DNA of 64,000 nucleotides from Blepharisma stoltei ATCC 30299 (GCA_965603825.1 CBFDEM010000021.1:372001-436000), one strand, 5' to 3'; positions 5,097-48,606 are shown, numbered from the stretch's first letter. The notes: generated by a model not told the origin, from the letters alone. Translations and numbers: made by a program.

Positions 5097-5648
<552 letters not shown>

Positions 5649-20436: not shown

Positions 20437-20596
20437 TTAACCTTTCTTTAGCAAATGCTTAAAAATAATTATTAAATTGATAAGTTCATTTTTTTTTAAA
20501 ATACCAGAATTTTGGTATTTTCATTTTTGAATTTTTATTAAAAAATATTATATAAAAAAGATAAAATAGATTTTAGAAAATTTGATTATTCTAAGT

Positions 20597-23500
20597 TTAA
20601 ATAAAGACCAAAGCTGCAGCCCAGACGATTGATAATTCAAAAGCTGCATCTTTAATAAGAACAAGGGTAGGTCTTTTCTTCTCCGCAAGACAAATTATAC
20701 TTTGAATGTTGCTATCAGCCATTAAGTCAGGATCCAAAGGTCTATTATTTGCTCCCGTAAACCAAAATTCATAGTTTCCATTAGTAGCATTCTGGAAAGT
20801 AATGTTAACTGCGTTTATTGTTGAAATATCTATATCTTGGGAAATGTCCACTTTGTTGTTTGTTGAGTTAAAACCATTTGAGATTTGCCATGAATTTGGC
20901 ATTGCCTCTCCTAAAGGAAGTCCAATAACATAAATTTTCCCCAAGCCGTTAAGTTTTACATTGAACTTATATGTATCTGAGCTATTATAAACAAGGCTTG
21001 GAGATATAGAAAATAATGGAGCCTTATACGTAACTTCCAATGCATTAGAAGTAACTGAATAGTTTGTATCAAGATTAGGCAAGTGGTTTTTCAGTAAATC
21101 TAAATTGTTATCCAAAGTTTGGACATAGCTCAATGGGGATTGCATGTCTAAGCTTCTATTAGCCACCATTGTGATTTCATAGTATAAAATGCTGGTCAAT
21201 CTTCTATTGAATATATCATACGATGCTGGATCAATTCCTGTATGATAGAATAAAGAGGCTGGCAAAGCAAGTGTTCTAGACACAGCATCAATCACTTTGG
21301 ATGGAGAAGATAAAGATGTCGTGTAAACGTTAAATTTGGCTGGCTTGTAAGAAGCCGAGGTTGTGAAATATAAAGTTTTTATGGATTTGGAAGCAATTCC
21401 ATTGAGGCCCACAGCAGCAAATGATATCATATAATTAGTATTGTCGCGAAGGTCTGGAATTGATATCATGGAGCTTATAAGTTGAGGAGAGGTAAAAGAG
21501 GATCCAAATGCTTGATAATCATCATTATTTACTCTTACTTTCTTGATTATACTAGTTACGTTTGGAACTGCTGAGCCTGGATGGGTCAGCATATAATAAA
21601 CTGTGCCATATTGACTTAACGAAACTTTGGCTTCGGCATTAACCCTTCCTATTTTAGTCATGCTAGCACTTAAGATTTCAGGGACTTCTGTTGAAGATGA
21701 AGCAATGGCTAACACAGTTTTCGATTTTTGTAAATAGAAGCATGAAGAAGATGGCCCACTTATTTTAAAGTCAATAAAGGTAGAAACTGCTCCAGGCTTT
21801 GCTGTAATTGTGAATGATTTTTTATACTCTCCGTCATTGAAAGCTAAATTAAATGGGTCAAAAATAAAAGAATCTGGTGAATCCTCAGCAGACACAGAAA
21901 CTATTAGGTAGTCAGCAACAGGGCGCTCTAGTTCAACATTGATAGGCACTGTTGTTCCATTAATAGGTAAATCCCCAATATTATCTATAGAGATCTTATA
22001 AGTTTGAGTTTGTGGCAGCACATTCACAATGATATCCTTTGGAGTATAATAAGTAGCGGAGTTCGTAGAATCTGCTTCAATTTGCCAAGAAAGCGTGTAA
22101 TAGCCAGAGTTAAGACTAGACAGAGCTCCAATTCTGAAAGTTTTAGCTGTATCCCAGGCATATTGCATAGATATCTTTGATGGTGATAGCTTTAATTGGG
22201 AATTTGTAGTGGATAAGGTAAGACTTAGTGTGGTATATGACGGAAGCTGAAGGGTTACAGAAAGAAAATCTGAGTAAGTGCCTTGGAGAACAGAGACACT
22301 TGTAGGAGATGAAATGCTATAGCTGCTGTTGCTGAAGCTTAAAGATGGGATTTGGGTAAGCATAGGAAAAGATCGGTATTTTACATGTGTAGAATCAGCA
22401 AATCTCAGATAGAACCTTTCTGTGACTCCTGCTGAGTTTGGAGTGGGGATGTTAAACAGAGTAAGATTTACAATTGTGCTTGGGCTTTGAAGACTAGGAA
22501 GATTTGATATTTCAGTCCTGGTATACCCAGTATATGCTAAAAGTTTACAATCTAGCTTGTAAGTTGTAGAAGAATAGACCATATCTGCAGTGCAAGTCGT
22601 TTGAGTAAAGATTCTTGATATTTCTGTCGGCCAATCAATCCACACTACATCAGTCGCCAAAACAGTTTTACCAGATAAGTCAATTGAAAAAGTATAGGAG
22701 GTCAAAGTATTTAGAATTGATTGTTCTGCGTCTATTGAGTTGAGAGGAACAATATCAGCAGCGCGCGTTATATTAAAGACTAACGCATTTCCTGAATCGC
22801 CTAAGGCGACACCTGCAGTATTGTCAATTACAAAAATTTCCAAATAGCTTGTAAGCCCTGCAGATGGATTTCCAATTCCATACATGCTGATAGCGATTTC
22901 TCTATTCTCAGTGAGGTTGTAGTTTAGAATGCTAAAACTGACTTCTCTGTTTCCATTCAAATTGCAGTTTGTAAATGTCCCTGAAGAGCTGCATAAGAAT
23001 TTGACATCATTAGGGACTAGACCATCAGCGTATTCTTCTGGGAACCTAATTATAAGTCCAATGCTGTTACTTTTAGTTAAGCTAATATCAGTTTTGATCT
23101 TAAAGGTGTAATAGGCTTGTTCGCCACTATTTGTAGGGTAATAAGTTCAATTAGTAACTATAGCATTTGCAGGCTTTTGATAAATTTGCATACTGCTATT
23201 ATCAGACCTTGCAATTAGGGATTGATCATAATAAATGTTTGCATAAAATGGGCTTACTGTTTTACTAGTTGATCCTTGGTCGATTGTGATGGTCGGGTTG
23301 ATAACATTTGATAAATAAATATTAACTGTGCTATAAAGAGCCACAGTTTCAAGCGTTGTGAGTGTCACCTTAGAATTTTGAGCAGAGCAAGTGGACAGAA
23401 AGTCTGATGAACAGCTTATGGATGAACTTAGAGAATAAGAGTCGGGAAATCCAAGCACTACTTGAGTCCCAACTTGAAGCATGACAGGCATAAATATATT

Positions 23501-26500
23501 AAACGTATAAGTATCTGACACACCGATTGCTTTAAATCGAGCTTTTACTGTAAACTGTGAGCTTGGCTCAGAAACTTTGCTTGAAATTGTGACTCTATTT
23601 GTTAATTGGCTGAAAATGACTAAAAAGTTATTTGAGTCATAAGCATAAATTTTGAAGCCTTGCGATCCTGTTGAAGTGGCTCCAGTCTTGCTTGGGTTTT
23701 TCATTCCAGTTACAGTGATATCTATATTTCCACTATAGTCAGAAGTAAACCCAGATACCTGAATCACTCTGTCATAGACAGTGCATTGATATATTGATGA
23801 ACAAATAGGAACTGGGCTGCTATCACTAAATCTTGGAAACTCTGCAGGCATGTAAACTTGAAGATATCCTCCTTTAGGAATGGAAATGCTTGGGACAACA
23901 GTCATTGCAAGCTGGACATAGACTGCGCTAGCAGAGTAGTCTGATAAAGTAAGCACTGAAATTGCCGCCGTTTGAGCTGCCAGTCCAGGATTAGTTGAAA
24001 TGGCTGAAGTAGTAAAAACTTCTGCAACATTATTTGATTTTACTGTATAGTAGTTCACATAGCAGCTGGAACAAGTAAAAACTGATGCAGGATTTTTCAT
24101 GTTTTGCAGTTCAATAGAATAGGAATCTGCAGCAAGAGAGCTTGCACCTAAATATATAACTATTATGCCTGTCTGTGGATATAAGTTATATGAAAGACTA
24201 GATAAAATGTTTGATGCTCCTTTCTTTATATTCACAGTCAAGCCAGAGTCTGGGATAGGGTAAACTGATGGGAAAGTGATGGTAATTAAATCATTTGCAC
24301 TCAGCGCAGTTAAAATATTGAAACTTAAGGTTGCTGTGCATGTTGCTCCGACTGTATTTTGTGATAGAGATAAGGTTTGGGCTAGATTAGAGGTTTGGGT
24401 TGTAGTAGAAATAGCTGAAAGAGTCTTATAAGATATATCATAGATTCAAACGATTGTTCCATCTGAGTACGTTTGATATATCCCAACGCCAACCGTTGGC
24501 TTGTAAGCGTCAGTTGCTCCATTTTTAATTTTAGAGAAATGGATCTCTATAAGTGTGTTTGCCTGAATTTCTTGGAAATTGGTGATCGATATATACGAAT
24601 TGGATGGTCTGGTTAGAGTTGAGTCTCCCTTCGTAAAAATACACTTTAGGCTTTCACCTTCTTTCGGAAGGATTCCTAGGATCTTAGCGCAAGGAACAGA
24701 ATTTCCAGTGGAATAGTACCCTAAGTTATCTGAAAAGCTTTGGAAAATTTCGAAATTTATTTGTATAGTCCCTTGTGGTCCTGCTTCGTTTTTAACAGTA
24801 TTTGGATATCCAGGCGGAATATATTGCGATGTTGTGAAAGAAACCTTGAGGACAGTCGGATAATTCGTTTCTAAATTCGTTAAAGAAATTGATAGGTCTG
24901 CAAAAGTTGACGAAGGCGAGATATATAATGATGGAAATGAAATTTCAATAAGGCTGTTATCATACATAGCGTAGGCCTCTAGTTGATAATATCCTGGGGA
25001 ATCTGGAACTCTGAACCCATTCACAGTCTGCCCTGTTGTTGTTAATTGTAGAAACGCACACTGATTTTTGAAAAACCCAGAAAACTCACTGGTATCCTCT
25101 GATTGCAGCAAAACTTCTAATATATTTTGCTTTCATGTGCAGGACTTGGAAACAGGATGAGTGTAGTTTCGGCTTCAATATAGAGGAAAATTATTATAGT
25201 ATAAATCTCCTTCTCCAATTACACAATATGGATTGCCACCTGCAGGTCCAAAACCAGCTGGAAAACTGATATATAACGTTGTGCCCATCGGCAAATCAAT
25301 GTGAGGCTGGATCCTTAAATATATATCTCCTATTTCTCCTGCTCTGATTTTTCTTGAATAAAGATCAGTTGTCACTCAATCAACCCAAAAGTCATAAGTA
25401 CTAGAATAGCTTTGAACTGTCCCAAAAGACTGAGAAGTATCTTCCTGTGCAAATAAGCTTGTATCGGTTGAGTCATATAAGCGCACTTCTAAATTCCCTG
25501 CAGGCCCAGCAGTACTTGAAGATAAAGCACCTATAGAGACTTTTATATGAGATGCGTTATCATAATTAAAGTTTGTCAAAATCACATGTTTGCTTGCACA
25601 AGATGTTGACGTGCAATCACTTTTGCATGATAAAGGCGGAGTTGCTATTGTGGTTACTCCTGAATAAGATCTGCATTGGTAGTCTATGAACTGAAAAGAG
25701 GAAGGGAAAATGATGTCAACTCTTTTTAAAGGAGAGCTTGAAGAAACTGGAAGAATATCGATTGTATAAATATCGTAGTAGTTTTTAGGGATTGTGGATC
25801 CTTGCTGGTTTGTTATTGTCACGCTGGTGGGAGCTCGAGGATTGAAGGAATCTAACTTTATGGTATGAATTTCGATCAATACTTGCTTGGAGATAACGTA
25901 TAGAGTTAGAGTGTATTGCGAATTTTGATGATAATTTGCAGAAATAAAGCCTGTGTTCGAGTTTAAAGTAAGTGTTTTTCCATTAAGATTATATGTAGCA
26001 GATAAGGTGATATCAGTTGTTATTCATTGAGAGGATCCGAAAGATAATGATTTGCATGTAGCAGAACCATCACAGCTCCCTGCCACTTTATCTCCTGCAA
26101 ATGCTGGCAAATCGAATGCAGAGTCCATCATTAGAATATATGAGCCACCTGCAGCATCAACAGTGCCTGAAGGCGAAGAAAGAGTAATGACAATTCCATT
26201 ACTGGCAAAGTCAGTTAAAGTTAGAGTTGTTGAAGAAGTTGCAGTTGAATCTGATATCGAAGCTGGAGAAAAAGTGCTCAAGCTTTTATATAAAAATACA
26301 TCATCTTCATATTTAATCAAATCATAGTCGAAGTACTCTTTCACTATTGTTAGTTTTGCTATACAATTGAGGTCCTGTGAAAATATTGTATCAGCATCAA
26401 GAGTTGGATTTTTAATATTTGCAATTCTTATAGTTGAGCTCACTCCTGAGGTTATTGCTAATCCAGTAATTTCTATATTTACAGGGTTATAAGAAGTAGA

Positions 26501-29500
26501 AATATCTGGAACTGTAAACTTGCAGATAGCAGCTTGAAGAGTAGATCCCTCAAATTCGCCACAATTAAGGGTGACTGATTTGCCAGTTAGTGCCCCAATG
26601 CCGAGATCTGGATCAAAAAGCTTGTCAAGTCCATTGAACGTAGGGAGAGAAAGACGGATAACATCAGTTGCGCTAATACTACTTGCTAGAGTCATCACTA
26701 TATCAAGAAAAGTTGAATAGCCTTTATTTGTGTGGCCAAGCTTTATTGACAAAGATGATATCTTCGCCCCATACAAAAGCTGAGTGAACTTGAACATTTG
26801 CACACTTAAAGGAGAGGCCACGTTAGCATTCAGGTACCAAGAAGTTCCATAGGCTTCAGTAATTGAGCTTGGCAATAATATTCCATTGTTGCTATCAGAG
26901 TCAGCAAATCTATATAAAATTTGAATCTGTCTAGAGCTTGCAGCGGGGATTGTCATTTGTTCAGGAATTTCTATTTGGATATAGTTTGGAGTCGTATGTG
27001 AAGTGCATTTCTCTGCTCGGACATAGTTGATTCCATCAGTTACAATGCACTGAAGTTGAAGATACTGATTGGAAGACGTAGTACTTAAAAAGGAAGCAGA
27101 AGAATCTAAATAAAAGTCAATTGTGTCATGAAAGCTGTATCCATTTGTTCTAGGCGTTATGTCAAAGATAATTCCTGAATACTCTCCAGGTCTTGAAGGG
27201 TATTGGGGTTTGTATTGCTGGCCGAAGGTTGACGAGGCTAATGCCTGAGGTGCACTTAAAATAGATGATGCTGAGAGACTTGCTGTGTTAGACTCAATGA
27301 GAGTATTTGTGTCACCATTAATTCCATAGATCTGAACTTCAAAAGAAGTAATCGCAGTTGTGGTAGATGTTGTAGCTGAAGTTAAAGTTCCAGAAATAAA
27401 TATAGGGTTGGTGGAATCGGTGTATGCTGAGAATCCAGTTATTTTTCATTTTTGAGGATTTGAAGACGCTTGACAATTCCAGTTTCCTGTTAAGCCATTT
27501 TGAACCCAGCAATTAGTACTGAGAGCTGTGAACTCGCTTGGGATCAAAATTAAAATGCTACCTCCTTTAGGGATTGGTTTGATTGGATTTATCTTTATAG
27601 TATACGTATCTGTTCTTCCTGAATAAGGCCCATATGTTCCTTCTTCAAGAAGCGTTGGGATCAAGCCAGTTGTGGTTTCTCTATCCAAATTAAAAGTGGA
27701 GTAAGTCAGTGAGTCTGTGTAAGCTCCGTTATACCATATCCATCCAATCCATGAAACTTGAGCTCCATAGGCTGGAGTGGCAAAAGCGAGATAGTCTTTG
27801 GTTGGAGATGAAGCCAAACTTCAAGCTGTTGACGGAAATGTTGCAATATAAGAATGGATTGGGAAAATATAAGTCTCTGTAGGGCCTGTAACCCCAGATA
27901 GACTAAAGTAATTATTGTTCATTTTTAAAACGCAAGCACCAATTTTTCCATTCGAAGGATCATATTGTATATCTTGAGAGCCTTTAATAGTAAAAGTTGC
28001 AGTGTTCGTAGTGCTTGAAATAGCTTTCGAATCATATGAAACTGATAAGGATGTTTGAGAATTTGGAGGGCTTTGAGCTGTTTCAGTCATATAAATATAG
28101 TTGAATTCCCGATAAAAAAGATACTGAAAATCATATGTTGTGCTTGAGGTTCACTGTCTTGCATACATTTTGATATTAATTATCTTTTCAGCATCATTTG
28201 GATTCGTAACTGGTAAAATGACAATTTTTGAAGTTCCAGAAGATATAGCGTCATATTTTCTTATCCATATTTCTGCATTCGTATTAGAATGGCCTCTTCT
28301 TAAGTAGCAGGTTGACGAAAACCCTGCACAATCAGTAATTGCCCAATCATCTGTATAATCCGTAGCACTCACAGAAGTTCCTAGGTTTGGGGTTCATACT
28401 GAACTATCAAATTCCAATATAATTTCTGACTTTCCATCAGAGGAACCGGAAGTATAACCAATTCCCTGAGCCAGTGACTGCTGGAATGATATGTAAAACC
28501 CATTCATGGTATTTTTTGCTTTAACAAAGTGCTCAATAGTACAAGAAGCAAACTGAGGGGGAGCGATGAAAAGTTCAGTCTTGAAATAGTAGTAAAAGTC
28601 ATCATTCCGCACCATTACCTTATAACGATAGTTTGAGCTCGGATTTTGGAACTTGAAGCCTTGATTTTCGGGATTTATAGATGTAACGACAACATTTCAG
28701 ACTTGAGATGCTGATATATCAGTTGTTTCTGGAGCATACACTTTGATTTGGTTATATGCCGGACTCGAGGAAGTAATCTGGCTATAAATGCAGTCATAGG
28801 ACATATATGTTGTTGAACTGCTTATTCACAGAGCTCGGCAGGTATATGGTTCTGATGATGATGTCACAAACACTTCGACAGCTGTGGTGATTGTGATGTA
28901 TCCAGTCTTTTTAGTGATTGGCTTAGAGTCAGTTTTAATTGAAAATTGAAGATCCCCATACTCACCTTGCCTTATTGGTACTTTTGAATCTCGCAGTCCA
29001 GGAGAAACTACTGAAGATTTCTTTAAAGCAATCTTAGGTGAAATTGTAATATCTTTGGTAATTGAATTCATGACTGAGTGGCTACAAGTTTCTTCTTGGC
29101 AAAATTTCAAAGTGATTGGTTTACCCCCAGAAGAATTTGGATTTGTTACAGGGAGTATAATTGTTATTGTTTCTTGGCTATATGTAAATCCTGATACTAA
29201 GAAAAAGTTATGTGTGTTATCTTTTTTGCATGAGCCGAACCCATTCTGATTGTTTAACTTAGTGCTATCTGAGAATATAAAATCACATCTAAATCCAAGA
29301 ACAAACTCATCTGGAAAAATGATTTGGAAATAAGAACTTTTAGGGTAATTTTGGCCAACTTTTATTGTAAGACTATATTTCATTGTAAGTCCTTGAGAAA
29401 GATCAACTGAATCATATGCTGAAATGCTAGTTGTACTATCAAAAGTATCAGGATCATACTCCTTATCATTATTACTAAATGTTACTTCGGATTTTACATC

Positions 29501-32500
29501 CTGATCCTTTATAAAGGTGGCAACAACAATATTGGTTAATGGATTGTAGTTCAGATTGGTCCATGATGTAAAATGTCAGGTAGTTTCTGAAGATGTAATT
29601 GCTGATTTCGGCTGACAAATAATGGTGTATAAAGGCTCCAAAATCAAGCTTAATTGACACTCAGAAATTATTACACTTGTTCCAATTGCGTATGGGAACT
29701 TAAAAATTATTAATTCAGATCCAGCAACAATATTAGAGCTGCTAACTGTAAGTGAAATTGTTTGAGACGAAGCCCAAGTGTTTTTGGGGTTTAAGTTTGA
29801 AGTATATGAATTTTCGGTTGGAGTAGTTGGATTTGCTGATGAGAAGGTTGTCAGAGCATATCAGATGACCCCCTCTGATACATATGTGTCTCATTTATCA
29901 GAATCCAACTTTATTAGCCTTACTCTGACATAAGATGTTAATCCAGAGCTAGAGTAAAGGGTAATTTGAGGAATGAAAAGATCTATTTGATCAGAACTTG
30001 TGAATGTTACTGGAATAATAACAATGGCTGGCCTATAATTGATGTCAGTATCTGATGAGCCTTTATTCTGGCCAAATCTGATATAGCAGCTAACCTGGTG
30101 AGTAACTTTGCTAGAGTCGCTGTAAGCACATCCGAGAGTAGTTTGCGATGCCATGCCAAGTGATTGATCATAATAATCTATGCCATTGAAATGAGTGGGA
30201 AATTCAGCAATTAAATAACTTGGATCAGGGATTGTAGTTTTAAGGGAAATTTTAAAAATTGATTTAGAATTTTCCTTAGCAATCAGTGGAATGACTTTTA
30301 GGGTGCTGAAGGCTGTTTGACCTAAAATATCTACAAATTCGGAAACCGCCCATTTTGCAGCTGTGCCAGCTGAATCATAAAGAGATACAATTATATATGG
30401 CTTTCCTGATGAAGGGAAAGCTATACCATTTTTTACCTCTCCAGTAGTGAAAATGCGTAATATTCACTTAAGATTATTTTCTATTGTCTTTAGTGATGGC
30501 ATAGCTATAGTCCACTTCTTGGAAGTTGAGTCGAAAGAGCATTTCTGAGAGCTATACTCGATACCATTAGAATCAATGAACTTGCAGACTGCTCTGCCTG
30601 TTGATGGGGTATAAGAAAAAGGATAAGAACTGCCAGTAGAAGGAACAGTTATCGATATATTGTCTGTAGATAATGGAGATGCAGCTAATTTAAAAATTAG
30701 CGTTAATTGTCCCTCAGAACCTCGTATAGGAGTCAAAGATGATTTCATAACATAATAGTTGCTAAATAAATCATCTGCAGATAATATATTATACTGGGAG
30801 TTCTGCGATTGGGGACCACCTGAACATTGATCTATAGTCTGTGAGCCTGCAGAATCTTTATGCGTGCTTATTATATATTGGCCTGATATTAAAGATGAAA
30901 TAGTTACCATTCCTTTAACAGTTAGTGTACTATCTGCATTACAACCTCCAAATCCACTTATAAGCCACCTCTGATTCGAGTCTGTTGGTTCACATTTTAG
31001 AAGATTTCCATTAAATGAAGTTCCGCAGCCAGTAGCTGTCATTCTGCAAGCTATTGAAGATGGATTAGTAGTCGTTGAAGTAATCCCTGTGGGAAATAAA
31101 ATACTTGTACTTCCTTGGCTTGGGATAGCATTTGGAATTGTATAACTGAAAGTTATTTCCCAGAATGAGTATGGATCAGTACTTGAATTATCATCGATAC
31201 CACCAGAACTGATTTGAATAGTGTCAGAATTAAATGTGTATTGTTCAAGGAGCATCCCGTTTGAAATTGCATAGCCTTCTATATATTTTGTCGTAGTGTA
31301 GCTATAAAAAACATTTTTAAATTCAAAAGTAGTTTCAGGTGTAGACGACCCAATTATCTGCTGCTGAGGGATATAAAGCATTCACCCACTGCTTGGAATC
31401 ATTTTGCATATTCCTGTATCTGCTGGAGATGCAGAATTGCTTACAGATGCTTTGCTTGACGAAGATAATGAGAAATCTGTAGGACTAAAAATGAATATAA
31501 AAGCGTCAGTCTTTGATTCAATATTTTGAGAAGGACTAAAAATCAAATTAAATTCAGTAAACACTTTTTGAGTGCTAGGGTTGCTTTTTTGATAAGTTAA
31601 TAGAGTGTTTGAGTTGGATTTTATTGTGAAAAAATTTTTGAGAGCTAAGCCATATTTTTTATTTGCTCCCAAAGCATAAACAAAAATATCTGTAGAGTAT
31701 GTATCCGAAGGATTTACAATATTTGAAATTCATAAAGTTGCTAGACTGCCTGCATCAATTTTATTATTAACAAATACTTTCAAATATAAGATTTTCGGCA
31801 GGGTATAATCTTGCTCATTATGGTTCAAGAAAGTGCAAATTTGTTCACTTTTTAGACTTCCCTCAGATGTGTAAGCCAGATAACAGTTTCCGTTTGCGTT
31901 ACTTGAGGTTGTTGAACTGAATAGAGAGTTTGAGGCGGCATCAAAAAGGGGAAATCCAACTAGAATTTCACTAGGCTTAGTTATGTCAGCATCTACCTGA
32001 AAGTTAATTTCAATGAATGTAGATTTAGTTTTGTCCGAAACATATGAATTCCCGTATAGCTTGGTAAATGGAGAGTAAATTTGTAAAGGAACTAATTTTG
32101 CCGTATAGTCACTTGATGATGTAGTTGAACCAGACTTGAAGATATCTAAGCTCGCTTTGATAGTATCAGAATCAATTTTAAACCCAATATTTGTGCCATA
32201 AGTTCCAAATGAAACTTTATATTTTTTTGACGCATCTAATTTCAGGCTGAGAGGAGCATATATATCTATTGTTATAGGGCTAGTTGTAGAAACTAAGACC
32301 CTTGCGGCAGAATATATATCAACTGCTGATACATCTTGAAAGGTGGCCCAATATGTTGATGAATCACTGGTGATAATGTTTGGATCAAAAGCAAGGCGAA
32401 TTATGCCATTTCCCGCATCTATATCTTCTAACGGTCTTATCTGAAAAGTAATGGGAGAAACTTCGTTAATAACAGCAATTTTGGCTGGAGCTTCGAAAGA

Positions 32501-35500
32501 AGCTGGAAAGCGCAAATCTTTAGATGAAATATATTTAATGTTGCTATTTTCTATATTCATTGAAATTTGTTCATCACTATACATATTTGTATCTGAAAAT
32601 GAAGTAGGTACTGAATAAAATGCACTAACATGAACTGAGTTATCACTATTTGATAGCATTGTGACGTATAAATATAGAGCAAAAGGGCTAGAAGATTTTT
32701 TTATATCAAAATTTGTAAAGTTCAAGTATACTTTTCCTGATGCCTCTGCTTGATTCATTATTATTCCATACTCTCTTTGGTCATTTATGAGAACATATGA
32801 TTTTGAATTGCTGATAGTTAAAGTGGCTGAATTAAATGAAACTATGAGAGCCCCCAGATTTGAGAGTTCCTGGTCAAAAGCCCCAGATATATAAAGCTGA
32901 GTATCTTCCTGAGTTCAGATGGCTGTATGGGGGTTTTTATTTGTTATTGAATAGTCTGGTTGATTAGCCGCAAAAGTAGAAGTGCCAGAGAATGGTTGAA
33001 AGCCATTTGAAGATGAATAGACATAGCCATAATATGTATAATCGCCACTAATTCAAGGATTGCTTATTTTCAGCTTTAAGGTTGATGATGATGAATTCAC
33101 AAGGAACTTACCATAAATGCAGGGACATGGCTTGCTAGAAAATGATATAATATTGTCAAGAGTTCCATCAGATGTTGTTGGTGCTGAAGAGCTATCTAAA
33201 CCTTCGAACCTCATCAAAACATAGTCACCATTAATAAATGAGAGTCCGTTCAATGTAAATGTTCATATAGGTATGGCACCTGCATTAGAGAATTCAGGTG
33301 AATAATTAACATTTACATTAGATGAGCTACTTGCGTCAATAGTGCTAATTTTGTTAGAATAGAACTTGTAGTATAATTTATTGATTCCATAAAGTATGAA
33401 ATTAACTTTTATTTCAGAGTCTCCACTAGCAGGAAATTTTACCATTGGAAAATATGCATGCATATTCTCTGAGCCATTAGGAGTCTCCATGAATAAGCAC
33501 GAAATGGTTCCTTGAAGAGAAGAAGAGCTTCCTTTTCGAAGTGAGCAGTTTCAATCTGAGTTTGGATAATTAGTAGAAGAAGAAGAGCTCTGAAAATTGA
33601 AAGGCAGTGAATCTCCGGTATTCAAATTAAGACCTAATGCAGAATCCGTGCTATCGAAAGATACTTCTATAGCAAGACCCAAAGTGTTACCAGCGCCAGC
33701 TAGAGTTGAGTAATCAGGATTTCCTACTCCGAACTCCCCTGTATTAAAGCTCACGTCCAGGACATTAGGCTTTCCTGCATATAAATAATTATTATTTATT
33801 GAGCATGAACCTATGCTACTAGGAAAACTAACTGGCCATGAATAGCCTTCCTTAATATCGCCGTCATTATAAGTTAAAATACTGATATAGCCATATCCTT
33901 TATAACTGATCGCTGCAGAGCAAGGCAGATAGACATTTACTGTTAGTTGTTGGGAAGTGCTAGCTCAAATAGAGTATGAAAAGGCAAGGTCAATTTTGGC
34001 AGGAGATCCATCTCAATCAGGTGAATTATTATATAAATTCTGTCCTCCTTGCTGAACTGTTGATGATGTGCAGGTAGATTTATACCCTGATGAAGGGATT
34101 GCAAAAATATCTGTTCAAACTGTGATTTTATTCATTGAGTAAGAAGGGGTAAAAACGATATTCAAATATGTTGAACTGGAACTGGTAGTTCCTGCAGATC
34201 CATTATTTAATTTCGGTTGTGGTGGTGAAGATAGAGTATGATAAGTGCTTCCACATCTTGCATCTAAAGGATCTTCCCATGCCTTCTTTGTGAACAAATT
34301 CTTGCATTCAGTATCTTGATATACCTCTATCATCACGTCAGCATTTGATACTGGGTTTGTAATAAGCAATTTAATAGAGAAAGGGTAGATTAAGGTCACT
34401 CCAAAAATATATGCAATTCCTTGATCAATTCTCCAAACTACATTTTTTTCAACAGAATTAGTCCCGAATACAAGAAATGACCCATCAAGCCCACTATATT
34501 TTCCATTATTGCCATCTGCAACATAAAATTTGATAGTTGCGCTTCCAAGGGCATTTCATGCACTATCTGTTCCTGATCCGAATGAAAAAGATCAACTCCT
34601 ATAGCTTTGAATGCCAGAGCAATATATTGGATCGAAACTGCTTAAAGTTTCAGGTGTATAACTTAAAGCACCAGTGTTAATTTCATCATCGCTAATAATT
34701 TTAGCCGATAATTCATACTTATTTGTGCATATCCTATTCTTTGCCAAAATCATTAAAAAGCTATTTGACCCACCAATTTTGGAATGGATTGGACCTGGAG
34801 CTTTAAAAGGTGAGTTGCCTCCTGATGATGATAGAGTGATGAATATTCAAGGGCCTTTAGTAAATTTTATTAATGTATTAGGAGCATTGGCAATAATATT
34901 TGAGTAATCGAAACCATCTAACCCAAATTTTATTAGCATAAAATCTGTGTTTGTGGGGATACCTGAAAAAGTGAAAAGATTTTGTGCACCGTAGGAGAAA
35001 GAAAATGATATACCTGATGAAGTTAATGAGGTTGAATCTGGAGCCTTTCCTGATGCAGCGAATACATTTTTGGCAGTCCTTTCTCCTAGGATTTTAAAGT
35101 TTTGTGACATCCTCACAACTCTTATATCAACAATTCCTTTATCATAATCACCAGAGGAATCGGTAAGAGCTGGATTGACAATCCCTGGTATTATTAAAGT
35201 ATAAATTATCTCGGTGCTTTGATCCGTAGAAACAAGGTTTACAATATGGATTTCTGCAGGATGATTTAGATCTTTATCTCCATAATGCAGATAGCATTTC
35301 GTGTCCGTCGACCCACCAGCACAGCCAATCTCATCGCCATTACTGATTCCTGTACCTAAGTCATTCGCAAAGAGTTCGATTGAACTGTCTCGATTAATTG
35401 TTGGAAATTGAATAATAAAAACATCAGTTTTAGTCGGTTGTGATTTTACCTCAATTGTAAAAACATTCGCGACTCCCGTTGTAATATGCATCACACTCAC

Positions 35501-38500
35501 ACTTAAGTATGAAAAAAGTGCTTCTGGCAAAGAATAAAAGTGAATTCCTTCCATATCATTTCCACCGCTGTTTTTGACAGAAACTTTGATATAATTTTCG
35601 CTTGTTGTTGAGTCTTCCAATTTAAGGCCGTCATTTCTATAATCAGCTCCGTGTGTTTTTACAATAAACCTATACTTCGTATTTGCTGTTAGTCCTATAC
35701 TTGGTATCATTTTAATATTTTTTTGGGTATCTTCAAAGGTACAGCTTGCAGAAAATTGGGTTTGAGCGCTTAGAATACTGCAATCCAACGATGCATCTGA
35801 ATCGATTGATGAAAATTTTGAGCTTGATGTTAGCAAAATATAAAATCCAGAAGCGATATCATTACTAGGTGAGAAGAAAAATTCTATTTGAAACTTATCG
35901 CCTGCCTTTACTGTTGTTGAAGGTAGCTCTTGAGTCTCGAAGTTAAAATAATTAGGAGCTGGAAGCAACACTGCTGGAGTGACTGCAATAGTGCTCGTTG
36001 AGTAGAAAAAGAAATTGTCGCTGCAGCTCTTATCAAGATATAAGGATGCTATGATATCTCCACTTCAGTTTTCATCTGGCTTGTAGGTAGATTTGACAAC
36101 AATTATGCTTTGAGTAGTAGCAGTAGTAGGAGTTGAAAATCCCGTAATCTCCAAAGTTTTAGAACTTGCTGAGCAACTCCAAGATCCTCCATTATCAGCA
36201 ACTATGTCTGAAGATAATGAGCTGATATTTTCACAGTAATCAATAATTGCGGCTTCAGGGGTTGTTATCTTCAGGCAATTCGTGTTTGTTAACTTGATAT
36301 AAGGAATTTTTACTGTAAATGTTAAATCGACGATCTGGCCTTTGCTATAATCTGCCAGACTAGGGCTTACAGTTAATAAAGAGCCTGAAGTTAATGCTGA
36401 AGGCAAGGCTGAAGGAACTTCATACTCATACGTTATCTTTGAATCCAAAGAATTGAAGTCCGAATTGGTAGGACTAGAGAGCAAGTAAGCATATATATTA
36501 GTTTCTGCGCTATTGAAATAGGATTTCCCCGCCTTCAAAGACAATTCCAAATTTGAGATAGACTTAATTATCAGGACTTTCGACGATCCATGTATCTGGT
36601 CTTTCGTCGCACCTATTGCAACGTCAGCCTCAGATATGTCAAATGTCGATGGAAAGCATAGATATAAGGTTCACACATTTGAAGATGGCAAGTTTAGCTT
36701 AAAGCTTATAATTGATTGGTCAGTATCTGTGAATGTAGGAAAATATTTTAAGCTAGTTGGCGTAACACCAGAAGTGACTGTGAACACATCATAGTAGGTT
36801 TGAGAATATATCACAGCATCGTTCTTATATCCCGTAACAGTGATATGAATATGAGTACTATCATCTGACGTCCATGCAGGATTCACAATGTTATCGAGAT
36901 AGAAAGCTATATATGATGAACCGGCCGATATACTTCCATCAAATGTAGGAGTTATCTCAATATAAGCAGGGCTCATCTGATTAGTATACCCATGATTAAT
37001 GGTGCAACTTGCAGAGGAAAGTATAGAAGAAGAGTCTATATCGCATGGATAATTGTACCCACTTGCAAGTCCAGTCCCTAAATCAACTGAAAATAAGCTT
37101 GTCCCATGACTGTCTTTAGTTGGAAAATACACTCTAATTTTGTCAATACTAGATGCCAAAGATACACAATCACTGCATGAGATCTTAATTGCGAAAAAGT
37201 TTGCCATTGATGCCGATGTATGCGCTGGAGTCACTTCTAAATTGTCCCATTTATCAGTAGGAGCTATGTTAATATTTAATTTCCCAATCTCATTGGTGCC
37301 TTCCCCAGAGTAAGAAACAGAAATTTGAATTGTTACGCTACCTGGGGTTGAAGGAAGAAGAAGTCCTTCTTTCTCAAAAGTTTCCGAATTTGTCGTCGTG
37401 AAGCTTAAATCTATTTTCGATGAGGCTGGATAATTATCAGGTGCATAAGTAGTTATTGTTAAAGTAGTTGTTGTTGTTGTTGTTGCTGTTGCTGAATAAG
37501 AAGCTTGGCACTTTGTGTCTACTTTTGAGTTCCACAAGCAAATAAGAGTAGATTCTGACAGAATATTTGGAAAGTTCGGAAGAGTTACTACTATGTTCCC
37601 AGCTGAGGTTTGTATTTCCCCTTTAGGAGTGTAAGAGAATACTATAGGGGCACAAGTTCCTATAGGAGCTTCAATAGGAAACTCATACTGTCTTGGAATT
37701 TCAAAATAAGTAGGAGCTTCAACGGTGCTTTCAACTGAATGAATTGTTATACTACTTTTCTCGCTTTGGGTTGTGCTTTGTTTTTCTTTATCCCAAACAG
37801 TATAGACACTGATTGTGTTTGATGTAGATAAGGTTGATGCTGAAGGCATCTTTACAGCTACGATAATCTTATAATTTTTACCATTCAGCAATCCAGATAC
37901 AGGAACATATGTCAATACATTGCTTAAAGTTGTGCAAGAATAGGATTCAAGACTGTTATAGTATGCATAACAATATGCTTCAGTGAGGATGTTGTTTGAA
38001 TTGAAATCAACAACTATAGCTCCACCTGCAGGTATATCAAATTTCGGCGTCACAGTTATCAGCATATCATATGTATCTTGTCCATAATATTCTGGGATAA
38101 AAGAAGGTGTCTCGTAATATCTCACTATTGTTGGCAAAGTTGAAAAGTCAATAGGCGTCAAATTATTGAAAAATGAATTAATCTTGAGGGTTTGAGTCAA
38201 AGTTCTGTCTTGCATGTAATATATGATGATCTTAGGATTAATTGCATCATCATCATCATAATCATGGCTTGGATTAACGGCGTTGCTAATAGTGATTGTT
38301 AAAGGATCCGTTGGTAATGCGCTACCAATTTGGATAATAAGTATCTTTGCAGATTTATCAAGAATGCACATACTGCTAGTGGCAGTGTCCTCACATTTTG
38401 AGTTTGTAGAAAACGAGGTGTCGGCAGGCAAATCCACTAATACATAGTCAGATACACTTCATCCAGCAACTGCAGGATTCGATCGAGGCTTTTGTATTGA

Positions 38501-41500
38501 TGGTGTAGGAATTGTAAGTGTATAAGTGGTTTTTTCGGCAACTAAATTACTACTTGCTGATATTGTTGGAGTCCCAGTAGTAGTACCTGGCGATAATGAA
38601 AATAAGTATCCCAGATTGTTTGCATAGCTATGGCATAATTTTGTGCCTGACAAATTGGATGTCATATCAGCTGCATATATTGAAAGAGAGAATATTTCAG
38701 AATCAAGAAGATCCGGATTCCCGCTTGGGTTCTTGAATTTACTGATGAAAAAATGAAAGCCAGTATCAGCGGTGATGTCTGAATTCGGACTAACATAGAT
38801 TCTTGCGGGCTCATTGTCATCATTTGAGCCTATCTGAAATGTGCATTTTATACTAATAGTGGTATCGCTTCCAGCAATACATGGAACATCGCTATCATCA
38901 GCATATTCATATCCCAAATCATTATCAAAAAATGTTGTTGGGAATTCAATCACAATTCTCCCTCCACTACTTCCAGACGCAGCTGGTATTTTTTGATCGC
39001 ATTTTATTGAAATATCCAATAAGTTTATTGAGTTAGGAATAAAATTTCCCGGGATGACAGTAATACTTGAAAATTCCTCAGGCAATATCTCTACATAGAG
39101 TGTCGAAACGTAAACAATAGTCCCACTTCCATCACAATCAAGGATTAAATCCAATTTGACTTGGTCTTTAATGTTTCACTGCAAGTTTCACTCCAAGCCT
39201 TGATAATTGTCTCTGTTCATTGTTGTGATTGTTAGTCCTAAATCTGTATTTGCAGGAAGGCCTGAGTCTGCAGGGGCATATATCTTATAGATTAAGTTTG
39301 TGCTATCATATATACAATCTGAAGCAAGTCTTTCAACGCCACTACTCTTTCAAATACATCTCAAACCGTAAGGGTGAGTATATGTCATTGATCCAGCCAC
39401 TGTAAGAAATCCTACTCTTTGAATGATTGCATTAGCAGAAGATATTGTCAGCACTAAAGGCCCAATATTCTTTCCTTTCCTTATTGGCTCAGCTCTGTGA
39501 TACATTAATCCCTTGGTTCCAAACTCAGTTGGCAGAAGCTTCTCTGGATGTGAGTTCATAACAATAGGCATGACAACCTCTCCTTTCTCATCAATCAGCT
39601 TATCAGTGTTGGTGCTTTCCCAATATGTTTTAAAATATGCAGTATACGTTGCTGATGCGATTTGAACATTAACAAATAAGCTTATAATATCGGTTTTCTG
39701 GATGTCTGAAGAAAATCCATAGATTGAGATGATTGCATTGGTTGAGGCAGGACTACTCTGTGAATCTGTTAAGACAAACTTCAATCCTTCAGGGTTTATG
39801 GTGCTCTCTGGGGTTAACCGAATACTGTTTTTGTCAATTCCAGATGCTAATCCACCGAATTCTATTTTAATTTGACCAGTGTAGGGAATCGGATTGATCG
39901 GTTGGAGCGTTATTCTGTACAATTCTGGCTGATCTGGGTAAAAGTCATAGTAGCTTGATATTGATACTTGAGTTGGAGCATTATTTTTAAAGTCTCCAGC
40001 ATTTAAATAATGCGATTCGGTAAAGTTATAAGATATTATCTTTTCTAATTTCCTATCCCTGATTATCATTGAAGTGCCCTTAATTTGATATTGATACCCA
40101 GGTGCTGTTATCCCGCCTATCTTAATGTAAAATTGATTTGAGGCTGTAATAATAGAAGAAGTAAGCCGAACTAAAGCATAATTTGCAATAGCAAATTTGA
40201 AGCAATAGCTCTGAGAGTTGTCATTTATTGAACAAGTTATGCTTGACACAGTATAGTCAGCGGGAAGTTTTATCATTACATAGTCAGTTCCACCCAAATC
40301 TTGAGTGGAATGCACCAAGATTAATTTTAAAACCAATCCAGTTTCGTAAAGTTCAGGGCGTTTGCATCCACTCGTACCATAAAAACAATCATTACTGGGT
40401 TCAGGAGAAGTAATAGAGCTTATGCTAGAAGGGAATGATAAGGTTGTGTCTATATAGGAGACTAATTCTTCAGCTTTAGTTACAAAAGTTGGAGACGTTA
40501 GAGTTTGCTCTTCAGCCCTTACTCTTATTTGCATGTCATAATTTGGGTTGGAAGGGTTTTTTATTGGGCCAAGGTAAAAGTGGAAAATTGTTGTGGCTTG
40601 AGAAGAGCTCGTTGACAAGCCTGTAATTTTAATTCTAACATAATCAATATAGCCATGAATAAGTGTGCAAACTATTCCATTTTCAGTTGAATCTGCAAAA
40701 TAAGGACAATCAATTGGACTGTTATTTGCCAAACCTGTTCCCAGATCAAAATCCCATGAAGAGCAAGGAAATTCAAGCCAGACAACTTTTGTGCCAGACA
40801 AAGAAATCCCAATCATGAAATTAAATTCAAGGAAGTTTCATTGGCTCGCGTATTTTTGAAGAGAGTTGATATAGATATATTTAAACCCTTGGGCTTGAAC
40901 ATGCATCCAAGGATTCGCAAACCCGTCGCTATTTTCAAGGCTTAGAGTGGTTATCTTGAACTGATAGTCCCCTGCAGTTGAAGGATATTGAATTCCTACC
41001 TCATCTGCAGTGGCATCATTAAGAGTGCTAATAGAGAGTTCATGCAAGGTACTATCACTCAAATCAGTATCTCTGTTAGTATATACAGTTATATCATTTC
41101 CACTATTTTTGCACCAACTTGAAATCAAGCCATCAATATAGCAATCTAATATTGTTGATGAAGGGACTGAGAAGCCTGTCGGAAGAGTCACTAAAATCTT
41201 TGCATAATTGCTGGTATGATCAGATTTTGTCAAAGTGACGTCTGATGGCAATTGAAAATTGAAAACTATTGGGCCTTTGTCTCCTGCTCTGGCAATAATT
41301 TTTGGAGAAACAAAACTGTGCAAGCTTGCTGCGGATGGAGAATTGCGAGCTGATGAATAATCAAGTGTGACTGTTGTCTGCTCAATCAATTTATTAAGAG
41401 TGTCATCTTCGTCGTTTGACGATATTGTAATGCTAGTTGATGAAAGACTTGAGGGAGCGTTCACGAACCCTAAAAAATCAAAAGAAGTGCTAGATGGCAA

Positions 41501-44401
41501 TTCTCCTGTAAAACTAAGAACATATCTATAACAGGTGTTTGGAGAGCTGCAAGCATCATTTTTTACGTAGCATTTGGCATTGACGCTACTTGGAGAAGTA
41601 ATTTTATAGCATGATGTTTCTGATATTGAATAATCAGCTGGGAATACTACTGAAGCAGTCCCTCCAGCTGTAATTCTTTGGGTGGTTTTGAATTGAAAAC
41701 GAATCAAAGCTCTGTTGGAAAGAACATTGCTTGACGTTGGGGTTAGCATTTCAGTGATTGCAGGAGTAGATCCAACTGCACTATCAAATGTCCCAGGAGT
41801 AAAATCAGTTGTAGAAATTATAGCACAATATGCCACCTCAGAGTTGCTAATTTGATAAACTGTAAAGGTCGTTGTTCCTTTGTATAGCCTATTCTTTAAA
41901 CTAATGCATGGGTTGATGGAGTCAGAATTAATGCTGGTTGAAGAAGATGGATTTTCGAAAATAATCACTTTAAAACTATCTGATATATAAAAGTTGTAGT
42001 TCCCAGCAGTAGCCAAGGAACCTGTGCCTCCACAAATAGAAATGCTATTACTGCTCAATTTTTTGAATTCATTAGGGACTATAATGAACAGCTTATCATT
42101 AGTTGCAAGAGAAATTCCTGAAGAAATAGTTAAGGTGTACTGAGTGTTCACGTATTCGGGGGTATCAGTTCCGCTAACAGTAACAGTCCCAGCGCTGGTG
42201 CAAAGGGAACTTTTTTGTTTAAGTGGAGAATCGCCTGCAAGATCTTTATATTCCAATGGCACTCCATCTGTATCTATAGTTTTCACTGTTGCTTTGGGTG
42301 TATAACCAATAAATTTATTATTTTTGATTCAGTAAAACAGAATATTTGTTGATGCATGGCCAGCTGAAATAAGATTCTGTGAGATAAGCTTGACTTTGGC
42401 AGGAATTAAAGGAGTTCCAGCAGTAATTGTGCAACTAGCACCTGTTCCCCAAACTGAAGTGTCGAAGACGCATTGAAATGAAGAGGTCTCAAGCGAATGC
42501 AAGCCTGTTCCAAGAGTGTTTGGAAATCCAAAATTGCTGGTTATGAAGTCTATTTCAACTCCACCTCCGATTGGAATATCAAGTCCATTGCTTATTGATA
42601 TAGATATTGTATTTTGGTAGTCCACAGAGTAATGCATCAAGTCCCAGCTTGCAGAGCCTTTATTGTTCAATGATGCAATATCAGAAGCGCTGCCAAGTTC
42701 TCTGGGAGCTTGCAAGTAGTTATAGTTCATTTCTTCAGTAAGGCTTAGTCCACTCCCGCTGTCAATTGAAACTTCAACTTTTATTGTCTTCTGTCCTCCT
42801 TGGGTGGCTAAAAATCCAAAATGAGTTTCAGTTGGACTTCCTAGTGTGGTTACTGTTATCGCTAGCGGGCAGCAGCCAAACTCCTCAGTTGATGGAGTGG
42901 TCATCGTTATGGTAGGAGGAGACCCAGATGTATATTGGCAGGAAGAAGCTGGAACTTGATTTTTCCCAAATAAGCAAGAGAGTTGGGTGTAGCTTGGAGG
43001 AACTTGAGTATCGCTTGGAAGATGCAATTTGATTTGGCCAGTTTTCCCATTTGCTGTAGCAGGCAATTCAGTTCGGGTTTGGAGGTAAAACTCAAAAGGT
43101 GCATAGATTCCCAATGGAGGTGTAGTCTTAGCCTTGAACATTTCCACGTTTATTTCTGTGGGTGCGCTTATGCTGGAAAGAGTGATCGTACCTGCTTCGT
43201 TATTTTCATCAATTGTATACCCGCTTGATGTTAATGCTGATATCTTGAAATAACTAGAAGTACCTGAGATTTTTGAATTCATTGCCACTGCTTCCAAAAT
43301 GACTAAGCCAGCTTTAAAATCGTCAAATTGAGTTATAATGATCGAATTTCCTGAAGGAGTGCATATCACAGAGTCTAATGGAGTCAGCCCATTTAAAATT
43401 TTACAATATGAAACTGACTGATACTCAGAAGGGAATGAAACTTTTATGCTTCCTCCTGCTGCAATATCCCCATGAGTTTTAAATCCAATATTATAGGTTC
43501 CTTCAACTGACAAGTGTAAGGGCCTTCCACTAATCTGAACACTTGAAATTACTCCAGGGGCTATATATGGGCCAGAAATTTGACTTGAAATTTGCTGAAC
43601 TGTATAAGTCCCTTTTTCCATGATTTCAGCCAAAAAATACCCTGTAGATCCGCTGTGACTTGGATTTAAAACTCCATAAATTCTCAAAGTTATAGTGCTT
43701 GGTAATATTGACAAGCTGCTTGTTTTTATCTTTAATAAGTCAATATTATCCTGGGTGCAGGAAATATATGAGCTGGTCTCTTCAATATAACATTTTAAAT
43801 TTGAGCTAATTGAAAATTCATTTGGTAGTGAAATCCTTATCCATGAGCCAATTTTTGCGTTTGAATCAGGAGTCATTGTAAATTTGAGTAAAGGAGAATA
43901 ATTCGCCATCAAGCTTCCATCAGCTTGCATGTAGCAATTAAGTGAGGTTGGCGAATCAAAAATCCCAATTGAAGGGTAAAGCTCGTTAGAGTCTTGAACT
44001 ATCCCATTGATCAAAGAGTAGATTTTAAAGTATCCTGTACTTTGCGTCGATAATGGATTTTGAATATTTTCGACTCCTAGGGACATTGTTCCAGCTTTTA
44101 AGGAGGAAAATGATCATGTTATACTGCTCGCATCTCTTGTGCAGGGAATTGAAGTTTTAGCTAGCTGAGAGTACATAAAGCCATTGCACGATGCGCTGCT
44201 AAGGGTTGCAAATTCCTGTGGGAAATGAATTGAAATCTGAGATGGCTCTGAAATACGATTTGGAAGAATGAATTGAAATACATAGAGAGAAAGCAGACCT
44301 TGATTAGTTCTATAAACTGTTATTGGTGTATTTGGATCTGGAGTTATTAATGCAGAAAGAGCCAAGCTAATAAGCAATTGAAATGAAAAGACTCTGATCA
44401 T
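20597..44401 (-). CDS. Giant (7,934 aa) secreted or surface-anchored, beta-rich, Ser/Thr-rich repeat protein
   Basis: 27 track ORFs lie in one frame; 26 end in TGA and only the last ends in TAA. I read all the larger gaps and found no TAA/TAG. 23,805 nt = 7,935 codons. Signal peptide MIRVFSFQLLISLALSA; hydrophobic terminal tail AAFELSIVWAAALVFI. Confidence 0.93.
24450..43550 (-). repeat. About 11 degenerate protein-level tandem repeats of about 590 aa (about 1.78 kb) inside the giant CDS
   Basis: [D/N/T/S/A]-LG-x-G...C motif at about 42512, 40742, 38915, 37079, 35357, 33635, (degenerate about 31920), 30158, 28382, 26603 and 24722; other motifs recur in the same register. Boundaries are approximate. 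Confidence 0.8.
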
Positions 44402-45200
44402 TAATTTTAACTTTATATTAAATTTCTGCTAATATAAATAAAAACTTTGAATGAAATCCGCTGTCATAATAATTTCAAAATCAAAGCTTATTTTAGCATT
44501 CAATGTATAATGCTTAGCCTTAAAATTATTTTCTATATTGATATTCTCTCATGCACTCTTGCAGCAGGAAACGACCTTTCTGAAACTTATCTAGACAAAG
44601 ACTGCTCCCAATATTTCTGAAGAGGAAACCATTTAGAAGTAGCTCTATTGTCTATAATGGCACTTTTTATTTATTGCCTTTAGCAATTTATTCCCAACCA
44701 TTATACCAGGAATTCTAAAATTACAGAATATCAAAGCAAGTCCAAAATATCTGATCATCAAAAGTTTCTCCTAAATCTTATTTGCTGTGCTCAAAAAAAC
44801 CCTTTGGTTACTTTCAGTATGAAATCTATGGATTCATATATTCTAGAATAAAAAGTTGGCGGAATAGATGTTTATTGTATAAAGTCTTATAATTTATGAT
44901 AAAACTTCTTTTCACTAATGAAGAAATAAATAATGATGAGTTGGCAAAAATGATCTTAATAATCTTAGAATTTTGTCAGAAAAAATTAAACATATCTCCT
45001 TATATGCTAATTTAAGTATTTATCTAAAAGACTCTGAAAGTTTGTCTAGATTTTTCACTTTGAAAGATGATAAAAAGTATTTCTTATTGAGAACTAAGTT
45101 TTTTGCTAGATGGACGTTGAAATTTGATCAGCTTCATTTATATTTGGTTATTTTTGATGCAAATTTCTTATATTTTCTTAAATAAATATTAAATAGCAAA

Positions 45201-48496: not shown

Positions 48497-48549
48497 TTAT
48501 GAATGATTATTTAATTAAATTTTTTTGAAAACTTCAATTATTTTTTTAT

Positions 48550-48606
48550 ATATAGTGACTTCAGGTAGATGGCGCGGAATGCGCCATCTACCTGAAATCT
48601 CTATAT
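48550..48606. repeat. GC-rich inverted repeat / hairpin
   Basis: TTCAGGTAGATGGCGC (48560-48575), GGAAT loop, GCGCCATCTACCTGAA (48581-48596): perfect 16-bp stem, extendable to 26 bp with 2 mismatches. Confidence 0.92.

Follow-up and report, generated by a model that had tools for sequence, protein, structure and literature searches.

A stretch of 64,000 nucleotides from the heterotrich Blepharisma stoltei ATCC 30299, referred to here as the window (contig 21, positions 372,001-436,000, of an assembly of 41.46 Mb in 64 contigs, GCA_965603825.1), carries on its minus strand a frame of 23.8 kb, running from 44401 to 20597, that is interrupted only by TGA. We consider it likely, taking the two statements jointly, that this frame is one real, uninterrupted and apparently intronless macronuclear gene read with UGA as tryptophan, and that its product is a secreted, probably lipid-anchored, rod-like surface protein in which a series of repeats forms an extender rod. 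Judging from sequence comparison, the protein is an expanded member of an unnamed family of heterotrich proteins of about 2,000 residues; it is thus neither an orphan nor categorically new.

The open frame and its genetic code

Read as its reverse complement, the interval 20597-44401 comprises 23,805 nt, a multiple of three, which begins with ATG and ends with TAA at 20597-20599. The frame contains 7,934 sense codons, among them 37 TGA, and no internal TAA or TAG; the remaining five frames across the same interval hold 255-485 TAA or TAG codons apiece. Given the off-frame rate of these two codons (4.9% per codon), the probability that a frame stays open over such a length has a log10 of approximately -173, and the runner-up frame free of TAA and TAG within the window reaches 1,215 codons. 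A first-pass annotation, made from the sequence alone, had already proposed a single frame ending in one TAA at 20597, and a search of the whole frame for TAA or TAG, of which there are none before the stop, agrees with this proposal. Its count of 27 TGA-separated open reading frames was off, as the TGA codons split the frame into 38 segments, 29 of which are at least 60 residues long, and its mass of roughly 0.85 MDa is close to that computed for the predicted protein (864.9 kDa for 7,934 residues, with an isoelectric point of 4.9 and 123 Cys).

The assignment of TGA to tryptophan in this gene is supported directly by alignments, because TGA codons fall opposite Trp both in a full-length paralog on contig 45 of the same assembly and in an ortholog of another organism (Logan contig L016). 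With the paralog, 16 of the 28 alignable TGA codons stand opposite Trp, the remainder being mostly opposite Phe, Tyr and Leu; with the ortholog, the figure is 16 of 23, and 11 of these 16 are written TGG there. The joining of the separate reading frames into one protein, as proposed in the first-pass annotation, is thus borne out. Moreover, TGA accounts for 0.47% of codons in frame versus 2.75% off-frame, which is how a sense codon for a rare amino acid would be expected to look. The published macronuclear genome of B. stoltei (41 Mbp, 66% A+T) also uses UGA as tryptophan and has tiny introns of 15-16 bp (PMC9942806). The window gene spells tryptophan with 39 TGG and 37 TGA codons, and the contig-45 paralog with 84 TGG and 16 TGA. 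Ten of the 37 TGA codons are clustered in approximately 650 codons (window 32915-34846, about residues 3185-3829).

Three lines of evidence argue for one gene rather than several, namely a collinear paralog that is conserved throughout, an ortholog whose frame is also open, and the absence of any enrichment of intron-like strings. The paralog (G000:C45:35775-59813, plus strand; 8,012 codons) has the same layout of eleven repeats and is collinear with the window protein from leader to tail, with 24-39% identity in each 250-residue window, including across Met2950, the internal methionine at which the only public model of the gene begins. Both giants contain 123 Cys, of which 73 align. The ortholog, from a different organism that also reads UGA as Trp, is 44% identical over 4,362 aligned residues, and its frame is open over all of its at least 4,525 codons to the contig edge, with 17 TGA and no TAA or TAG. 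As for introns, a 16-nt intron inside the coding sequence would disrupt the frame, and intron-like strings of 15 nt occur five times in it versus 11.3 expected from codon shuffles; strings of 16-18 nt are likewise not enriched over the shuffles. Since intron-like 15-mers are not enriched, the idea that tiny introns are concealed within the frame was rejected. Beside the ortholog lies another open frame, of 2,401 codons and in the opposite orientation (L016:13757-20962, minus strand), which holds 17 in-frame TGA.

Architecture, folds and family

The protein can be divided into a leader, a head, a long series of super-repeats, a conserved C-terminal module and a hydrophobic tail. The features of the gene, all on the minus strand, are as follows (window coordinates; the basis of each assignment is given in brackets; HMM, hidden Markov model; GPI, glycosylphosphatidylinositol).

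20597..44401, minus: complete coding sequence, 7,934 codons plus TAA, apparently intronless (single open frame with only TGA inside; collinear paralog)
44342..44401, minus: hydrophobic leader, about residues 1-20, inferred signal peptide (Kyte-Doolittle mean 1.97 over the first 19 residues)
42995..44341, minus: N-terminal head, residues 21-469, with partial copies of super-repeat sub-domains (profile and family alignment)
22814..42994, minus: eleven super-repeats of about 600 residues and one partial, residues 470-7196 (iterated HMM)
41162-42994, 39374-41161, 37559-39373 and 35801-37558, minus: super-repeat copies 1-4 (iterated HMM)
33908-35800, 32330-33907, 30605-32329 and 28850-30604, minus: copies 5-8 (iterated HMM)
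27068-28849, 25088-27067 and 23591-25087, minus: copies 9-11; 22814-23590, minus: the partial copy (iterated HMM)
35552..35554, minus: internal ATG (Met2950), start of the public model P0001 (inside super-repeat copy 5)
20648..22813, minus: conserved C-terminal module, residues 7197-7918, with about six or seven beta-sandwich domains, two of them FN3 (profile and model)
20600..20647, minus: C-terminal hydrophobic tail, last 16 residues, resembling a GPI-attachment signal, with the stop codon directly after (hydropathy)
20597..20599, minus: stop codon TAA (frame translation)

The super-repeats start at residues 470, 1081, 1677, 2282, 2868, 3499, 4025, 4600, 5185, 5779 and 6439 and are approximately 20% identical to one another. 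Partial copies lie at residues 29-407 and 6938-7196; within the head, residues 29-132 and 158-407 match the C-terminal half of the super-repeat profile, and the head as a whole aligns with the N-terminus of family members of about 2,000 residues (for example, P0037). Copy 6 is degenerate in the window protein (E 0.0016) and clear in the paralog (E 1e-85). The mean column identity is 32% for the C-terminal module (alignment A3) and 18% for the super-repeats (alignment A2), and the module contains several motifs that are near-invariant across the family. Cysteine makes up 1.6% of residues, mostly as pairs 12-17 residues apart within domains of about 140 residues.

A signal peptide and a terminal hydrophobic tail without cytosolic residues had been proposed for this protein, and both a hydrophobic N-terminal leader and a tail with the stop codon directly after it are indeed present. 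The accompanying statement was that there is no obvious internal transmembrane helix. No internal hydrophobic segment is common to both giants; the window protein alone has one stretch of 19 residues, at residue 3329, with a Kyte-Doolittle value of 1.87. This stretch lies in the region of window 32915-34846, which is rich in TGA and where copy 6 is hard to recognise, although identity to the paralog is still 24-33%.

An AlphaFold2 (AF2) model of super-repeat copy 10, built on an alignment of 62 rows, is all-beta and has a mean pLDDT (predicted local distance difference test) of 81.1 and a pTM (predicted template-modelling score) of 0.75; the latter value suggests about four domains in a defined arrangement rather than loose beads. 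Foldseek aligned the model with strings of Ig-like domains (a Chlamydomonas mastigoneme, antigen I/II, integrin legs, PrgB and Bap) at a global template-modelling (TM) score of about 0.2; the best match of a single domain was the YcnI/DUF1775 Ig-like sandwich (Z 12.2, root-mean-square deviation (rmsd) 2.8, 120 residues), followed by Gram-positive pilin and cohesin domains. The C-terminal module was modelled at a pLDDT of 85.6, with FN3 and further sandwiches, a small helical insert and the tail as a terminal helix. Its model residues 373-490 match sDscam FNIII1 (Z 11.8, rmsd 2.2 over 93 residues), and the module profile finds a Dscam FN3 domain in the PDB at E 2e-5. By sequence, profile searches of the PDB returned FN3 fragments only. 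Pfam searches with ten large pieces of the protein, 62 aligned super-repeats and 32 C-terminal modules gave nothing above threshold for any part of the window protein, in line with the earlier view that it belongs to no named family; on relatives, DUF2808 and fn3 matches are sporadic, the latter in five of the 32 modules, that of the window protein not among them. In the ESM Atlas, a feature search with a family member gave no usable match, and a shape search gave weak ones (TM 0.25-0.40) to surface proteins of the DUF2808, DUF11 and CARDB types and to hypothetical oomycete proteins.

The super-repeat profile defines a sizeable family: it matches at least 1,000 proteins at E<=1e-3, 387 of them at E<=1e-10, among 1.84 billion representatives. 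No member bears a functional name. Most are about 2,000 residues long and a few reach 4,500-6,900; the named sources are B. stoltei and Stentor coeruleus, and one member is an MMETSP transcript. For example, S. coeruleus SteCoe_8125 is 44% identical to P0063, a 2,001-residue "unnamed protein product" of B. stoltei for which contig 36 of this assembly has an exact coding match. Across the genome, the profile of the C-terminal module has 53 matches, 11 of them full-length at E<1e-100. One is the module of the window protein (G000:C21:392603-394786), which covers positions 2-734 of the 735 of the A3 profile (E 7e-188, 621 bits), and, besides the two giants, the other nine loci are genes of 1,973-2,058 residues, each with a leader and a hydrophobic tail. 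The super-repeat profile covers members of about 2,000 residues once in full (for example, P0032 residues 486-1035). Mapped onto the giants, this short form comprises the head, one full super-repeat and a partial one, the module and the tail, and the giants have the same form with ten additional super-repeats. Literature searches covering giant proteins of Blepharisma, GPI-anchored surface proteins of heterotrichs and SteCoe_8125 gave no account of the family.

In a maximum-likelihood tree of the C-terminal module, the giants form one clade (support of 98 in the Shimodaira-Hasegawa-like approximate likelihood ratio test, SH-aLRT) that comprises the window protein with its ortholog, the paralog with its own ortholog, and a metagenomic protein of 6,875 residues. 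The short B. stoltei members are dispersed among old subfamilies with orthologs elsewhere. Because the window protein and its paralog each have closer orthologs elsewhere, the giant duplication appears to be old and both copies to have been kept; on this tree, the expansion of the repeats happened once and is likewise old. Environmental contigs that carry family members have eukaryotic neighbours (ODAD1, EF1G, Kelch and HSP90). Two of these contigs (L014 and L015) have a G+C content of about 50-53%, use TGA as a stop and are dense in eukaryotic genes, including one for the outer-dynein-arm docking protein ODAD1; the family therefore reaches ciliated eukaryotes that use the standard code and differ greatly in base composition.

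Probable secretion and surface display, and the alternatives

A leader of the same kind is found in the paralog and in the nine other family genes of the genome. Whether the chain passes through the endoplasmic reticulum (ER) can also be approached through its N-glycosylation sequons, measured as the share of Asn residues not followed by Pro that have Ser or Thr at +2 and compared with the base rate of Ser plus Thr.

Rod, window protein, residues 470-7000: 18/353 (5.1%); base 24.1%; p 8e-22
Rod, paralog: 14/318 (4.4%); base 25.4%; p 2e-23
Rod, ortholog: 8/154 (5.2%); base 21.4%
C-terminal region, residue 7000 to end, window protein: 14/68 (20.6%); base 23.0%; not significant
C-terminal region, residue 7000 to end, paralog: 15/60 (25%); base 19.6%; not significant

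Sequons are thus depleted approximately five-fold in the rod and normal in the C-terminal module. Two controls, Asp-x-Ser/Thr and the reversed motif over the whole protein, lie at expectation. In four metagenomic giants sequons are depleted as well (z -5.5 to -8.7), and in three members of about 2,000 residues they are not. Since selection against sequons would otherwise be senseless, their loss from the rod indicates that the chain is exposed to oligosaccharyltransferase. STT3 is present in this genome at three loci (G000:C41:204534-205757, C4:535183-536412 and C4:217015-218169). That the stalk differs from the rod in its sequons suggests a need to keep the surface of the rod free of N-glycans. 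The STT3 matches themselves hold in-frame TAG and TGA, the simplest cause being tiny introns inside a six-frame match.

At the other end, nearly all full-length family members close with a hydrophobic stretch of about 11-20 residues, which ends the protein and usually follows small residues. A tail of this length would not comfortably span a membrane as a helix and is characteristic of GPI signals, so that by its sequence it may be called GPI-signal-like, and the GPI transamidase subunits PIG-T (Gpi16) and GAA1 are encoded in this genome above Pfam cut-offs. The proposal in the first-pass annotation that the protein is extracellular is accordingly strengthened by the leader, the paired conserved Cys, the all-beta Ig-like and FN3 folds, the family-wide tail and the loss of sequons from the rod.

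It is reasonable to propose, on this basis, that the leader is cleaved, that the chain is translocated into the ER, and that the hydrophobic C-terminal signal is most likely exchanged for a GPI anchor, by which the protein would be displayed on the plasma or ciliary membrane. The head of about 450 residues would then lie distal from the membrane, and the FN3-containing module of about 720 residues would form a membrane-proximal stalk. Between them, the eleven super-repeats of about 600 residues, each with approximately four packed Ig-like beta-sandwich domains and conserved Cys pairs, would act as a stiff, deliberately N-glycan-free extender. With about 55-60 sandwich domains, the estimated reach is of the order of 200 nm if the chain is extended; the rod may thus hold the head at least about 200 nm away from the membrane, a distance several times that spanned by the paralogs of 2,000 residues. 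On the simplest reading, the number of repeats would set the distance of the head, as in the repeat regions of bacterial giant adhesins. Such a protein, made up of known types of fold, would most plausibly work in the manner of a giant fibrillar adhesin or spacer, and could serve in long-range contact (with other cells, the substrate or prey) or as a surface spacer or coat, and a glycan-free rod may also permit lateral or homophilic packing. A bolder version, which we regard as speculative and rather doubtful, is that the two giants of about 0.87 MDa build an undescribed fibrillar layer, about 200 nm deep, on the cell or ciliary surface, that their rods have been purged of sequons in order to pack laterally or bind each other, that the layer mediates ciliary adhesion in Blepharisma conjugation or contact with prey or substrate, and that the paralogs of about 2,000 residues form a short-range layer beneath.

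Comparison with known systems is instructive in this context. The closest are the ordinary family members of about 2,000 residues (P0063 and SteCoe_8125), which share the leader, head, super-repeat profile, C-terminal module and tail; these have one full and one partial super-repeat and normal sequons, whereas the window protein has eleven and a partial one and a sequon-depleted rod. No described function was found for any of them. Bacterial giant fibrillar adhesins (Bap/Esp, SiiE, RTX adhesins, antigen I/II and Gram-positive pilins) likewise project a terminal region on long arrays of Ig-like domains, and on this side the fold matches include pilin, cohesin and YcnI-type sandwiches at the level of domains and antigen I/II, PrgB and Bap at that of chains. 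However, Pfam families such as Big_x, CnaB, Cadherin-like and RTX have no match in the window protein or the 62 aligned super-repeats, so the likeness is one of fold only. Furthermore, the window protein would follow a eukaryotic ER route with a GPI-like C-terminal signal instead of an LPXTG, type 1 secretion system (T1SS) or outer-membrane anchor, and its unit of repetition is a four-domain super-repeat of about 600 residues rather than a single domain. A eukaryotic parallel is the Chlamydomonas mastigoneme protein Mst1 (PDB 8wa2 and 9b4h), a hair-like glycoprotein of the ciliary surface composed of many Ig-like domains. Mst1 is the top Foldseek match of the super-repeat model (E 1e-7) and ranks high for the C-terminal module, with a global TM score of 0.14-0.22 and an rmsd above 20 A, and the PDB profile search found no sequence match to it. 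Homology is not established, and Mst1 is heavily glycosylated, whereas the rod of the window protein is purged of N-glycan sites.

An alternative is that the protein is not displayed but released, as a self-assembling component of a matrix or store (cyst wall, mucocyst, pigment-granule content or a lorica-like structure), the tail being only a sorting or processing signal. A rod without glycans and a repeat whose domains are rigidly packed (pTM 0.75) would lend themselves to side-by-side assembly as a lattice or fibre, and heterotrichs do form cysts and extrusomes. Nonetheless, a tail that is family-wide and a conserved membrane-proximal module that bears sequons normally make the pattern of an anchored protein, and nothing in these data points to an extrusome; we therefore regard this alternative as unlikely.

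It has also to be asked whether the locus holds two or more genes, with a product of 4,985 residues that starts at Met2950; the 8.8 kb upstream would then be a gene of its own, or else a remnant that is untranslated or in decay. The sole public protein at the locus, P0001 (4,985 residues, an unnamed protein in NCBI/UniRef from assembly GCA_914767885.1), corresponds to residues 2950-7934 of the window protein at 100% identity, that is, to its C-terminal 63%. A search among proteins of 2,742-8,724 residues gave no longer model, and no model of the upstream part occurs among the top matches. However, the upstream 2,949 codons are free of TAA and TAG and as conserved as the rest (26-39% identity to the paralog per 250-residue window), the paralog keeps the full-length layout, and the only putative signal peptide sits upstream of Met2950. 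As Met2950 lies within super-repeat copy 5, and a product starting there would lack a leader and yet have features of an extracellular protein, we conclude from the sequence that P0001 is truncated at its N-terminus, with 2,949 residues absent. The reading as several genes was rejected on these grounds and appears highly improbable.

The record that contains P0001 (L013, GCA_914767885.1 CAJZBQ010000021.1), when compared with window 19121-37831, corresponds to this locus but has eight additional segments, absent from the window, of about 299, 338, 230, 549, 498, 562, 330 and 1,017 bp, flanked by direct repeats of 1-17 bp. The comparison places their insertion points at window 36170, 34322/34323, 34186/34187, 28704-28720, 26307-26322, 22811-22825, 21885-21887 and 20592-20599; seven of the eight interrupt coding sequence and one sits on the stop codon. 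These segments look like germline-limited sequences (internal eliminated sequences, IES) in an assembly of macronucleus plus IES (MAC+IES), and if so the giant frame would exist only after their precise removal.

That the giants are variable surface antigens, expressed in a mutually exclusive manner as heterotrich counterparts of the immobilisation antigens of Paramecium and Tetrahymena, is the least credible proposal and was rejected, for although the giants resemble these antigens as large ciliate proteins, probably of the surface, that have a leader and a short C-terminal signal of GPI type, and although this is a multigene family of probably GPI-anchored ciliate proteins, there are just two giants, the subfamilies are old with one-to-one orthologs in Stentor and environmental relatives and without lineage-specific bursts, and no Pfam match resembles an i-antigen. 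Indeed, i-antigens are Cys-rich proteins of about 250-300 kDa with short periodic Cys motifs, in contrast to the 1.6% Cys, lack of short-period Cys repeats, super-repeats of about 600 residues and 865 kDa of the window protein, a dissimilarity that the first-pass annotation had rightly noted.

Several points weigh against the reading as one gene for an anchored surface rod. The public annotation begins at Met2950 and may rest on RNA-based evidence, and the gene received no transcript support from four sequencing runs of one study (X1-X4), guessed to be RNA. On window 32701-38600, these runs gave contigs of 120-530 nt at a depth of 2-8 with no joints, with loose ends at 34322 and 34335, exactly at one IES junction, and, in X4, with many single-base differences. 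As each run yields about 32 Mb of contigs and loose ends fall at the junction at 34322, the runs probably represent low-coverage DNA, in part from the germline or a different strain, and do not count as evidence that the gene is expressed. In addition, the tail may itself be an embedded anchor without lipid exchange, or the protein may be released. The length in nanometres and the rigidity are estimates from domain counts and from the pTM of one modelled repeat, the matches of predicted fold are to generic beta-sandwich strings of low global TM and carry no functional information, and the tree comes from a quick search with SH-aLRT support only.

Neighbouring genes and significance

The flanks of the gene (window 1-20436 and 45020-64000) contain unrelated housekeeping genes, several of which are also split by in-frame TGA, and there is no gene cluster. 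The following were recognised.

19330-20433, plus: NAAA/acid-ceramidase-like hydrolase
14602-16143, plus: zuotin-type DnaJ
12495-14513, minus: HID1/dymeclin
52829-53896, minus: Ank-SAM
54376-55773, plus: SWIB
56184-59828, plus: ABC transporter

The new results are a gene model at full length, the family with the modular logic of its members, the ancient pair of giants, and the sequon-purged rod. The public gene model is corrected by 2,949 N-terminal residues, including the only putative signal peptide. Beyond this single locus, the analysis defines a hitherto undescribed family of heterotrich surface proteins, from Blepharisma, Stentor and environmental relatives, in which a constant head and anchor would be combined with either one or eleven super-repeats.

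The combination of a sequon-poor rod with a normal stalk recurs in the tested giants (the paralog, the ortholog and the four metagenomic proteins) and provides evidence of exposure to the ER that comes from sequence only. This pattern points to a structural constraint and is worth examining in other giant extracellular proteins. In molecular terms, surface contact in these model giant cells, whether in the adhesion of mating pairs, anchoring or the capture of prey, is almost a blank; the family therefore offers candidates that can be tested by RNA interference.

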